Source: Octopus sinensis
Taxonomy: Eukaryota
Assembly: GCF_006345805.1 (NCBI RefSeq)
Contig: NC_042997.1
Span: 139,376,001-139,440,000, forward strand
Direction: 5' to 3'
DNA length: 64,000 nucleotides
The translations under genes were made by a program, and so were the position numbers. The notes beneath the pieces are model-generated. The model ran no database searches and had not been told where the DNA came from. It worked only from the letters and a program-made list of their open reading frames with translations. Shown here piece by piece: positions 17,837 through 56,953 of this stretch; the first letter of the stretch is position 1, and the number at the start of each line of letters is the position of its first letter.

Positions 17837-17936
17837 TTAAATGAAAACACGTATAACGGTAAGAATCAACACAAGTAGAAGAGCAGTTTGTTTCAGCGGT
17901 GGAGCGGCGGCTACACGGCAGCGGATTGAATCAAAT
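17837..17936 (-). CDS. Terminal coding exon G: last EGF Cys + GPI-anchor-like signal, stop TAA
   Basis: ttttcattacag|A TTT GAT ... ATT TAA. Encodes (R)FDSIRCRVAAAPPLKQTALLLVLILTVIRVFI*. It supplies the sixth EGF Cys and the phase fits exon F. Confidence 0.85.
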
Positions 17937-18220
17937 CTGTAATGAAAAAAAAAATGGCAGAAATTAAAACAAAGATACATTGTTATCATCATCATCATCA
18001 TCATCATCATCATCATCATTATTATTATTATTATTATTATTATTATTATTATTATTATTATTATTATTATTTTATTATTATTATTATTATTATTATTATT
18101 ATTATTATCATCATCATCATCATCATCATCATCATCATCATCATCATCATCATCATCATCATTATTATTTATCACATCATCATCATCATCATCATCATTA
18201 TTATTATTATCATTATTATT

Positions 18221-18775
18221 GAGTGAGAGAGCAGTTCATGCCATCAAAGTGACACTGGGGTAAAATATACGAAGCCCAATATACCCATCATGACTACCCG
18301 TCTGATAAGGGGACACCAGGCACATGCATCACAACCATATGTGCGCGACATGGTGATCTCATATCAAGATAAACAGCACATGACCTTGCAGGTGGGGCCC
18401 AGTTAGAATTTTCTTCAGGTTGAGTAGCCCATCCCGCTCAAACGGTCCCTGAATAAGGGTTGTTTAAGGATGTTGAAAAAACCACCCATGTTTCCAGAGG
18501 TGAATTATTCAAACCCCAAAGAATCCCTCTCAACACATGGCTATGATGTCCCCCCACTACTTCTGCTCGTGATCAGAGATGCACATATCGTCAGCCACTA
18601 AGGGACATGCTCAACTGGTTAAGGTCAAACAACTGACAAGCAAATCTGTGGTATTGAGCAGAATATTTGCTGTAGCCCATCTTTTATACCAAGTCAAAAC
18701 AATGTACATGATAACACTTCCAATCAGTTAAGATCAGAAGCCATGAGAGCCACTGCCTGGTACTGCATCAGGGCA
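18221..18775 (-). mobile_element. Dispersed ~550 bp repeat ending CTCTCTCACTC(AAT)n, probably a non-LTR retrotransposon 3' end (possibly R4/Dong-like); copy 1
   Basis: Highly similar copies at 33953-34335, 54114-54540 and 58211-58535; embedded in ATT/ATC microsatellites. Confidence 0.65.
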
Positions 18776-18919
18776 TTATTATTATTATTATTATTATTAT
18801 ATTATTATTATTATATTATTATTATTATTATTATTATTATTATTATTATTATTATATTATTATTATTATTATTATTATTATTATTATTATTATTATTAAT
18901 ATTATTATTATTATTATCA

Positions 18920-19400
18920 CAGAAGGTTGCTAAAAATGCCAAATTTGTTATCTTCTGTTCGGTTTTCATGACTATCCTTATATGTGGTCATGAATGTTGG
19001 CTAATGGCCGAAAGAGGACGATTGCGAATACAAGCGGCCGAAATGGGGTTCCTTGAAGGAATCTCTGCAGTAATATTACTCGACAGGGTGTGAAGCTCAA
19101 AGATCGAGGAGTCTCTCCACGTCGAGCCGCTACTTCTTTGTATTGAGAGGTAACATCTCTCGTACTATGGACATGAAATTAGAATGCCACAAGAAAGAAT
19201 CACAAGATAAATTCTTCCATACGAGCTAACCAGCAAGAGAACTAGAGGTAGACCAAAAATGAGATGGTTGGATGATATCTCTAACCTCATTTGGGAATCC
19301 AACAGGAAAGTTTAAAAGCAGTTGCTTTTGATAGAAACTTATGGAAGAGGTGCCTGAGGACTCTACTTCCAAGACCCTCCCAGGAATAATGAGCAGAGAA
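18920..19400 (+). mobile_element. RTE-clade LINE 3' fragment
   Basis: ILICGHECWLMAERGRLRIQAAEMGFL..LLDRV..VEPLLL..YGHEIRMPQER..RTRGRPKMRWLDDI. Confidence 0.85.
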
Positions 19401-53741: not shown

Positions 53742-53848
53742 TAACCTGAAGAGTGGCTATATTAATATTGAAGTGATTTTACTACTACTACTACTATTAT
53801 TTTTACTATTAGCATTTCTTGAATATAGACACGAAACACGTGTCGTTA
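53742..53848 (+). ncRNA. Type I hammerhead ribozyme motif with intact core
   Basis: taac-CTGAAGA-GTGgCTATATT..AATATAGaCAC-GAAA-C-ACGT-GTC|gtta. Core bases are intact, stems I and II pair, and stem III has a palindromic loop. Confidence 0.7.
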
Positions 53849-54113
53849 TTCTACCAAATATATACGTTTTATTTATTATTTTGCACATTACTTAATCATT
53901 GTTATATGTTTTATCTTATATTTAATCTTTCTATAATATGTAATTTTTCTAAATGGTATAATTTAATTTTTCATTATTGAATTGATAAAAGGTGGGGTTT
54001 TTTCTAATTTATATATATATATATATATTTTATGAAATTTGATTTAGTATTTCTAAATTGAATTTTTCCCTGTAAGTTTGAAATAATGTTCCCTCATATT
54101 ATTATTATTATTT

Positions 54114-54540
54114 AGTGAGAGAGCAGTTCATGCCATCAAAGTAACACTGGGGTAAAATATACGAAGCCCAATATACCCATCATGACTACCCGTCTGATAA
54201 GAGTACACCAGGCACATGCATCACAACCATATGTGTGCAACATGGTTATCTCATATCAAGATAAACAGCACATGACCTTGCAGGTGGGCCCCAATTAGAA
54301 TTTTCTTCAGGTTGAGTAGCCCATCCCGCTCAAACGGTCCCTGAATAAGGGTTGTTTAAGGATGTTGAAAGAACCACCCATGTTTCCAGAGGTGAACTAT
54401 TCAAACCCCAAAGAATCCCTCTCAACACATGGCTATGATGCTCCCCCACTACTTCTCCTCGTGATCAGAGATGCACATATCGTCAACCGCTAAGGGACAT
54501 GCTCAACTGGTTACGGTCAAACAACTGACAAGCAAATCTG
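54114..54540 (-). mobile_element. Same (AAT)n-tailed repeat, 5'-truncated copy
   Basis: Near-identical to 18221-18650; (ATT)n on both sides. Confidence 0.65.
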
Positions 54541-56000
54541 TTATTATTATTATTATATTATTATTATTATATTATTATTATTATATATATATATATATAT
54601 ATATATATATATATATATATATATATATATATACGCACACAATGAGATAGCGTCAGGTAAAATGGATTAACTTTAGGAGCTAGATTGATTTGGTGATTTT
54701 AGAGCTAATATCATGGTTTTCGAAACGATACCAACTTAATGTTCACACTACATATTTCCAGTCGGATAGTATAGGATGAGTGATTTGTCAGGACATCTCT
54801 AGAAATCAATAGAGACACCGATTCGAAGGACATGTGAGCTATTATTCAATCTGACTGAACATATTCGAGCAAACCAAAGGTTACCGCAAAAGCGGTAATC
54901 GGGCAAGAAATGAGTCAATAAAGAATGTCACGGAAAAACAAATACGAAGCAGAAATGTTTCCCAAATCAATTAGATCTACATTTTGCTTACTCAAAACTA
55001 CTCGTCATTAACACTCCAATCATTTTCACTACCTCCACTTCTTCCACTCACCCTCACACACTCTTTCCATCCTTATACACGCACACACTTCCATCTCCCT
55101 ACATACTTCATTTCCCGCTTTTGCACATTGGTTCAAGCGCAACCTAACACCCACTTCATCTCCCATTATTACACGCACTCATGCATATATACACAAATGC
55201 ACACATGCACTCATAGTCACCTCTCTTACATTTATTCACTTCAGCACCTGTCTAACATTAGCCCTCTACCCTGTAGACTTTCTTCTCTGACAGAAACCAG
55301 TATTTTTGCTCCTACTTTACCTTGCTGATATAGACCTAACTCGGATTACAATGATAATGGTCTCCTTATCTAGTATAGAACTTCTTTCAACCCGATATAG
55401 CTTCAACTTGCCTTTTACGAATTTTTATAACAATTATATGGACCTGTTGTATATAATTGGGTAAGAATTGAAGAATAATTAAAGGGTTAAGAGTCGGAAA
55501 GGTTATGGTCTCGGACACGAAAGAAGATTTTTTAAAAATTTGGTGTGATGAACTTTACTGTACTCTTATCTAAAACGTTTGTTTAACTACCTTCATGAGA
55601 AATTTGTCTAGGACACTCTTTCGAGTAGTTTTCTTATTTTTTTATCCAACTTTGCCACTGATCCATATCTCTTATGATAAAATTTACAATAAAGTAATAA
55701 TGAAACTTAAATTTCATCGCCATTGACGATTCCAGCAATATCTTCTACTTCAGATGAGACATAAAATATTATAGCGATTACGATATTTCATTTGCCAGGT
55801 ATGACTTTTTCAAAATTATATTTTCACGTAAAATCCTTATAAGACAAGGTTTTAAATAGATTTTGAAATATGTAGCCTGCCTCTCATACTTTGCAATGTA
55901 TCGCACATATAGTTTATCATTCTGAAGCAACCTCACAATTATATTTTCTTCTAAAATTAGTTGAACGTCTTAAAATTAAATATATAAAGATGTTTCTTAC

Positions 56001-56953
56001 CTCGGTCGACGAATATGAGTCCAGTTAACAAACCGATACATGTAATCCATAACTGGCGAAACGGAAGATATAATCCATTGGTTTGATTTACCACAATCCA
56101 TATATGGTTGTGTAAAATAAACCGGAAGTGGAATTTTTCCAGCTGTCTGACCAGGTTGACTTGGTCCAAAGAATGAATCAACACTATATTCCTGAGAAGT
56201 AAACGCTCCTGTATAATTGGAATATTTAAAACCAATATTGTAAGAGAATTTAGTAAGAGAATCCATACTACTCGAAGTATCAGGAAGTTCATAAACATTG
56301 TACCAAGGTGTTGTCTTTGAGGAAGGATCAGTATAATTGTGATTACTTGCACCAAAATCTTTGATCATTACTGTTTGTAAGGTCATCTCTCGAAGATAAT
56401 TATCTGAATCTCTTGAATCATCCCATCGCCAGGCAGACGGACCAAATAAAGGCAATGTTGTATTAAATTTGTACGGGTCCAACCAATTGGGATAAGAACA
56501 GTTATAGTCATAAAATAAACTGCTGCCGTTCAGACTAAATGGATTAGCATTGACATCAGCAACTGCTGACATATACATATACATCCAGCCTGGCAAACTG
56601 GGAAAATCACTCTTAGATTCATTGAATTTTTGTAGCATGTAGCTATGGAAATATGCTCTGTTTAATGCCATATTATGAAGATGCAAGAGTTTCGTGCGAT
56701 TTTTATACATGACCTTGCTCAAAAGTTCATTGTATTTTGGCAGCTGAGATACGACGTCTGCTCTCACAGTTAACTGGTCTCTCGATTTGCCTCTGCAGTT
56801 CTGCGGCGTGATTGCCGTAATTTTATCCTGTATTTCGTCGTAGTTATCATATTTCATCCATTCGAATTCTCCAGAAGTGTATGTTGTATACAAGAATACA
56901 ACAAACAGACAAGCTAGATGAAAGCTCACAGTACTGATTAACGTTTTCGCCAT
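56001..56953 (-). CDS. Coding exon A: signal peptide + Cache-like module 1 (aa 1-318)
   Basis: ATG at 56953 (AAGATGG). Hydrophobic MAKTLISTVSFHLACLFVVFLYTTYTSG. GPR158-type motifs ITPQNC and FTQPYMDCGKSNQWIISSVSPV. Acceptor tattttcag at 56990-56991, donor AG|gtaaga at 56000 (phase 2). Confidence 0.92.

Follow-up and report, generated by a model that had tools for sequence, protein, structure and literature searches.

The window analysed here, 64,000 nucleotides of Octopus sinensis DNA (contig NC_042997.1, positions 139,376,001 to 139,440,000), carries on its minus strand a gene for an extracellular protein in which the ectodomain module of the receptors GPR158 and GPR179 occurs twice and is not followed by a seven-transmembrane (7TM) region. 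Each module consists of a Cache-like domain and a cysteine-rich domain of the epidermal growth factor (EGF-like) type, and the two are recognised by the same Pfam family, PF22572 (GPR158_179_EC). The whole layout is conserved across protostomes under strong constraint.

A seven-exon gene on the minus strand

The gene consists of seven exons and extends from position 56953 to position 17837 of the window; the exons were recognised from stop-free stretches together with homologues, and the borders were taken from the DNA itself. The exons and the elements encoded by them are as follows.

56953-56001, minus strand: exon A, with the start codon, the signal peptide and the greater part of the module-1 Cache-like domain (residues 1-317)
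56953-56873, minus strand: signal peptide (residues 1-27), within exon A
44410-44281, minus strand: exon a', with the last Cache strand and the start of EGF-like domain 1 (residues 318-361); part of the PF22572 match
27335-27170, minus strand: exon C, with the remainder of EGF-like domain 1 (residues 362-416); PF22572 positions 71-95
25925-24911, minus strand: exon D, with the linker (residues 417-512) and the greater part of the module-2 Cache-like domain (residues 513-754)
23718-23604, minus strand: exon d', with the last Cache strand and the start of EGF-like domain 2 (residues 755-793); aligned to GPR158 residues 300-340
20933-20779, minus strand: exon E, with EGF-like domain 2 and the helix following it (residues 794-844)
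17936-17837, minus strand, TAA included: exon F, with 'RFDSIRCR', C851, a small-residue stretch and the hydrophobic tail
17839-17837, minus strand: stop codon, at the end of exon F

Together they form an intact coding sequence of 2634 nucleotides for 877 amino acids. The six introns (11.6, 16.9, 1.2, 1.2, 2.7 and 2.8 kb in order) are all of the GT-AG type, with GTAAG, GTAAA or GTAAC at the donors and AG with a pyrimidine-rich region at the acceptors, and the exon phases match at all joins. The seven exons and the 877-residue frame proposed in a preliminary description of this DNA, made from the letters alone, are thereby borne out exactly. The start codon has an A at position -3 and a G at position +4, and an in-frame stop lies six codons upstream. 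Homologues of exon A show 46-68% identity in molluscs and flatworms; since each of the exons has homologues at 36-77% identity in several phyla, a chance origin of the frame can be excluded. A pseudogene was considered and rejected, as every exon is open and conserved.

Read-through at the donor of exon E (20779/20778) or of exon A (56001/56000) runs straight into a stop (AGG TAA). This accounts for the ends '...NR' or '...PR' of the Argonauta and Physella models and of many exon open reading frames (ORFs); the Argonauta model P0047 begins in exon a'. Two further entries, P0048 and P0049, were rejected as transcript evidence from close relatives because they are genomic exon-D ORFs ending at the read-through stop. 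Retention of the last intron would yield a secreted form that lacks the tail.

Two ectodomain modules and their fold

Hydropathy analysis revealed only two hydrophobic segments in the protein, residues 1-24 and 853-877. In a Pfam scan, PF22572 (gathering cut-off 28.1 bits) matched with 62.8 bits at residues 280-383 in module 1 and with 82.6 bits at about residues 720-814 in module 2; single exons gave weak partial matches only, because the domain is spread over three exons. Module 2 also has a partial match to the bacterial PDC/Cache family PF22673, and neither a 7tm_3 nor a VWA domain was detected by Pfam in the 877 residues. Each module contains one Cache-type cysteine pair and six cysteines in the EGF-like part (C337, C355, C362, C377, C379 and C412 in module 1; C772, C788, C794, C809, C811 and C851 in module 2). 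Pfam, hydropathy and cysteine pattern agree with the layout put forward in the preliminary description, a signal peptide, two GPR158/179-type Cache+EGF modules and a short hydrophobic C-terminus, and the outcome it predicted for a domain scan, two ectodomain matches and no 7tm_3, was obtained. The two modules share 27% identity over about 120 residues, which indicates that the duplication is old. Ten N-glycosylation sequons are present, eight of them in module 1. One of the sequons, NCS, includes C152 (about 56500-56498), an odd ninth cysteine of module 1 which is found in spiralian orthologues and missing in arthropods, and which could be free or engaged in an inter-chain bond.

When all sequences of the PDB were searched, the only significant matches (E <= 1e-5) were GPR158 (E 7e-9) and GPR179 (E 1e-5), with alignments covering residues 720-818, so that sequence likeness to these receptors is confined to about 100 residues of module 2. 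For the fold, orthologues were modelled in place of the 877-residue protein, Argonauta P0047 for module 2 and Candidula P0007 for module 1. The Argonauta protein is 75% identical and spans EGF-like domain 1, the linker and module 2, and was modelled with a predicted local distance difference test (pLDDT) score of 83.9, the linker being disordered with values below 50. Its best fold matches in the PDB are two structures of GPR179 (8irj, E 3e-11; 8d1b, E 5e-10, template modelling score 0.60 on the target), followed in third place by the bacterial dCache kinase sensor 3LIC (E 9e-9), and GPR158 was matched too. The Candidula model (pLDDT 72.6, with a poor EGF part) matched 3LIC best (E 4e-5) and then other dCache sensors, and GPR158 (7ewp) with an E value of 2e-3 and a probability of 0.99. 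According to these models both modules are Cache-like and module 2 is nearer to the receptor ectodomains, in line with the structural relationship to the GPR158 ectodomain that had been expected.

Absence of a receptor body and conservation of the family

The last exon encodes 'RFDSIRCRVAAAPPLKQTALLLVLILTVIRVFI' followed by the stop codon. The pattern 'R(F/Y)D.L.CR(I/V/L)(A/S)G(A/S)' with a hydrophobic end, to which this sequence belongs, also forms the C-terminus of orthologues from gastropods, bivalves, a rotifer, tardigrades, flatworms and arthropods. Full-length orthologues comprise 791-982 amino acids and align with the octopus protein from the signal peptide to the tail, the identity to five arthropod orthologues being 36-38% over about 770 residues, collinear from end to end. 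The hydrophobic tail breaks off after 15 residues, leaving no cytoplasmic sequence and hence no C-terminus of the kind that recruits RGS7-Gbeta5.

The seven exons might nevertheless be the 5' part of a GPR158/Smog-type receptor gene, with the 7TM exons located downstream or beyond the window. Cephalopod introns are long, as those of 11.6 and 16.9 kb in this gene illustrate, the window reaches just 17.8 kb past exon F, and the Argonauta and Physella models end before exon F. Against this stands the conservation of exon F, its stop codon and the hydrophobic tail across phyla, together with the termination of full-length orthologues of about 800-980 amino acids at that tail. PF00003 (7tm_3) was absent from the precomputed Pfam lists of all homologue matches, and the 17.8 kb downstream of exon F gave no Pfam match of any kind on the same strand when stop-free segments of at least 28 amino acids were scanned. 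Moreover, a profile of the family was searched against 1.84 billion representative sequences: family members scored 800-1100 bits across the whole profile, whereas long proteins of 1150-1900 amino acids, such as Anastrepha LOC129243565 and a Cochliomyia protein, matched the module-2 part alone with about 165 bits, and these we take to be putative true receptors. Because the terminal exon is conserved and full-length orthologues end there, a missing receptor body is ruled out, and the notion of a truncated receptor gene, already largely refuted, is extremely improbable. The preliminary description was right in stating that a 7TM is lacking, there being no internal hydrophobic segment, no 7tm_3 in the protein or downstream of it, and a common end in the orthologues.

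A second alternative is that two adjacent genes, one for module 1 with about 400 amino acids and a separate one for module 2, have been falsely joined. It could draw on database models with a single module (e.g. Saccostrea with 405 and Aplysia with 361 amino acids), on the Bulinus entries Btru_030631 and Btru_030619, which lie on one contig, and on the low identity of the two modules. Inspection of exon D and its borders revealed, however, neither a start codon of its own nor a signal peptide ahead of module 2, and the phases of exons C and D match. Module 1, linker and module 2 lie in one frame in the models of Argonauta, Pinctada, Gigantopelta, Physella and Solemya, continuous ORFs extend over both modules in arthropods, flatworms, scallops and Biomphalaria, and the single-module entries start or stop at exon borders, as truncated predictions do. 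In addition, ORFs of 689-914 amino acids on contigs of 3-10 kb, which are seemingly transcript-derived, contain both modules and the tail. A false fusion is thus very improbable, and we regard the locus as a single gene without a receptor body.

The family was found in molluscs, flatworms (Schistosoma, Macrostomum, Paragonimus), a rotifer and tardigrades, and in all major arthropod groups, that is, in chelicerates, a myriapod, crustaceans and many insect orders. Every orthologue from a nameable organism belongs to a protostome, no search having been aimed at non-protostome genomes. A single cluster at 90% identity comprises Anastrepha, Musca and at least a dozen Drosophila species (e.g. D. simulans GD20036, 807 amino acids); the identity of at least 90% among the fly copies indicates very strong purifying selection. 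The most conserved stretches of the family are the Cache helices of both modules, 'LLHLHNMALNRAFFYSY' and 'ARTALRLAHFLSNFLQN', which correspond to the dimer helices of GPR158/179. The sequences closest to the octopus protein are an exon ORF (84-90% identity) and the Argonauta protein mentioned above. Family members are deposited as 'uncharacterized', 'hypothetical', 'GPR158/179 extracellular domain-containing protein' (an automatic name) or 'putative G-protein coupled receptor', which is misleading.

Octopuses possess a second full-length protein with two modules, O. bimaculoides LOC106873574 (P0250; 884 amino acids, 45% identical to the protein of the window). In a rough neighbour-joining tree, the gene of the window and Argonauta 'LOC106882646' group with Pinctada, Argopecten and gastropods, and the other octopus gene falls beside Solemya and Dreissena. 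This topology hints at two paralogue lineages of long standing in molluscs. Orthologues of the same architecture, which the preliminary description proposed to seek in lophotrochozoans, were found in molluscs, flatworms, tardigrades and arthropods. The preliminary description had presented the protein as unusual; the octopus protein is, however, one of a large family already represented in databases and has a paralogue in the same genus. To judge from these comparisons it is not a cephalopod oddity, and it is a member of an old, strongly constrained protostome family. No paper on 7TM-less GPR158-type proteins was found in a literature search of incomplete coverage, in which a hit from a fly screen under a CG number could be missed; this agrees with the earlier remark that no functional description was known.

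Repetitive elements occur within and around the gene; introns 1 and 2 and its downstream flank harbour transposon relics.

28779-29057 (plus), 41739-42053 (plus) and 52366-52686 (minus): fragments of piggyBac-type (DDE_Tnp_1_7, E 6e-14) and mariner (E 3e-6) transposases and a weak GIY-YIG match (E 9e-4), detected by Pfam
60678-62924, plus strand: direct duplication in tandem (period about 1.14 kb, copies 99-100% identical), upstream of the gene

The near-identical ORFs 61257-61643 and 62397-62786 belong to the tandem duplication. An ORF at 12067-12420 (minus strand), which by eye resembles the GIY-YIG ORF, had no Pfam match. Immediately upstream of exon F there are long microsatellites with tri- and dinucleotide units, and a dispersed repeat is present on both strands, with translations sharing '...RRKLKEA.RIY...LPNP.T..W...LPKVPRSGTE.GT...'. 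Between them these repeats occupy 17940-18235 and many further places in the window (e.g. 2393-2740, 14491-14727, 49530-49927 and 51889-52176).

Candidate processing, anchoring and a possible subunit role

The linker and the C-terminal end contain the following elements, which bear on the maturation of the protein.

25839-25828, minus strand: furin-type site 1, R-K-K-R (residues 446-449) followed by S, directly after module 1
25647-25636, minus strand: furin-type site 2, R-F-R-R (residues 510-513) followed by S, directly before module 2
17911-17903, minus strand: small-residue stretch A854-A856 in exon F, candidate omega site
17884-17840, minus strand: hydrophobic tail A863-I877 in exon F

The linker is poorly conserved, with 17-24% identity to other molluscs versus about 50% in the modules. 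Both motifs conform to the pattern R-x-K/R-R and are situated in the linker, which is disordered in the orthologue model. Site 1 is kept in Argonauta, Solemya, Gigantopelta, Adineta, Macrostomum and a JGI sequence, and molluscs, a rotifer and a tardigrade have equivalents of site 2 (RxKR/RRKR) that align with it. Rotifer and flatworm have both furin-type sites and the tardigrade only the one before module 2; none of the five arthropod orthologues examined, in which the linker is half as long, has such a motif. Cleavage is therefore plausibly a lineage-specific property and not a core feature.

The tail follows the order AAA-PPLKQT-ALLLVLILTVIRVFI, i.e. small residues, a polar spacer and a hydrophobic end, which makes it a candidate signal for attachment of a glycosylphosphatidylinositol (GPI) anchor. 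A protein of the same architecture could instead have a plain single-pass or tail-type anchor or be a secreted matrix protein, as the tails of Tachypleus and Halotydeus extend 5-10 polar residues past the hydrophobic stretch and as the stop reached by read-through of the exon E donor would give a tail-less, secreted form. Most orthologues, however, end within or right after the hydrophobic run of about 15 residues, with small residues (AAA, AGA, SGS) and a short polar spacer ahead of it, and the tail varies in sequence with its character conserved, as GPI signals do. A protein without a GPI anchor is unlikely on this evidence, though much less so than the two alternative gene structures discussed above.

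Taking all properties together, the product is probably an extracellular, membrane-tethered tandem Cache+EGF glycoprotein without a 7TM, which would be anchored, in part cleaved and folded into a pseudo-dimer. Since it has neither a 7TM nor a cytoplasmic part, it cannot signal by itself. The C-terminal tail would be exchanged for a GPI anchor, and in spiralians proprotein convertases would cut at the two conserved sites flanking the linker, which would yield a module-1 fragment and, associated with it, a module-2 fragment carrying the anchor. Packed against each other via their Cache helices, the tandem modules may form a pseudo-dimer within one chain, an arrangement favoured because in GPR179 and the metabotropic glycine receptor mGlyR (GPR158) it is the Cache-domain helices that mediate dimerisation (PMC11437087) and the matching helices are the most conserved stretches of the family. 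The receptor ectodomains bind pikachurin or small ligands (PMC11437087). The pseudo-dimer would offer a surface or pocket of the same kind, to which a small ligand or a partner in the matrix or on a cell surface could bind, and information could then be passed to a separate signalling or channel subunit, which would make the protein a co-receptor or organiser rather than a receptor. The preliminary description had suggested a possible role as co-receptor, decoy or adhesion molecule, and each of these is likewise putative.

Of the known systems, GPR158 and GPR179 are the nearest: their ectodomains have the same module, Cache followed by a cysteine-rich EGF-like domain, they are the only significant relatives of solved structure by sequence, and by fold they are the best or near-best matches. 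Drosophila Smog is the reported fly relative of these receptors. The octopus protein differs from GPR158 and GPR179 in lacking the 7TM and the cytoplasmic RGS7-binding tail, in having two modules in tandem instead of one, in its GPI-signal-like tail and, in the cysteine-rich part, in having six cysteines versus ten in GPR179 (PMC11437087). With bacterial dCache sensors, such as the histidine-kinase ectodomain 3LIC and the ligand-binding domains of chemoreceptors, both modules share the fold; unlike them, the animal protein has no transmitter module and possesses EGF-like domains. Alpha2delta and CACHD1 are likewise extracellular, Cache-containing auxiliary proteins that carry no signalling domain. 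Cleavage gives alpha2delta two chains that stay associated, and it has a GPI anchor, which is the layout proposed here for the spiralian orthologues. It differs from the octopus protein, which has EGF-like domains and no VWA domain with its MIDAS motif, and in fold the orthologue models match alpha2delta only marginally (55 aligned columns, E 0.1-0.5). The resemblance is an analogy, neither membership nor homology at the level of architecture. Of the convergence with alpha2delta claimed in the preliminary description, the Cache fold is confirmed, while the proteolytic split would be confined to the spiralians and the tardigrade, where the furin-type sites were found.

Several points weigh against the interpretation of the product as an anchored, cleaved pseudo-dimer. 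The exon junctions rest on splice signals and orthologous gene models, and the fold was obtained with models of orthologues, not of the octopus protein itself. As the arthropod orthologues lack the cleavage sites, the core function cannot depend on processing. The GPI signal was judged by eye from the shape of the tail, and the short polar extension of some arthropod tails would fit a single-pass anchor too. The pseudo-dimer and its binding partner are putative, their basis being analogy with the receptors. Finally, the positions aligned to E271 and D307 of GPR158, which we take to be residues of the glycine pocket, vary between modules and between phyla, and glycine binding should not be assumed.

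A more specific proposal is that the family represents an unrecognised, protostome-wide, lipid-anchored sensor or organiser subunit, a single-chain mimic of the dimeric GPR158/179 ectodomain. Its binding partner would be a small ligand, a proteoglycan or an LG-domain protein, and it would act via a separate signalling or channel subunit, in the manner of GFRalpha for RET or of alpha2delta for CaV channels. We offer this proposal tentatively, as a possibility with the balance of probability clearly against it.

GPR158 and GPR179 are under active study as a metabotropic glycine receptor and as trans-synaptic organisers, and the Cache+EGF ectodomain has so far been treated as part of a G-protein coupled receptor; here the same module is found twice and free of a receptor. 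The proteins themselves are already present in public databases, where labels such as 'putative G-protein coupled receptor', attached to members without a 7TM, can now be corrected. Owing to the conservation from octopus to Drosophila, the fly orthologue provides a genetically tractable entry to the role of the ectodomain in its own right. If the family does act as a sensor or organiser, its near-invariance in flies would point to an essential, unexplored pathway.

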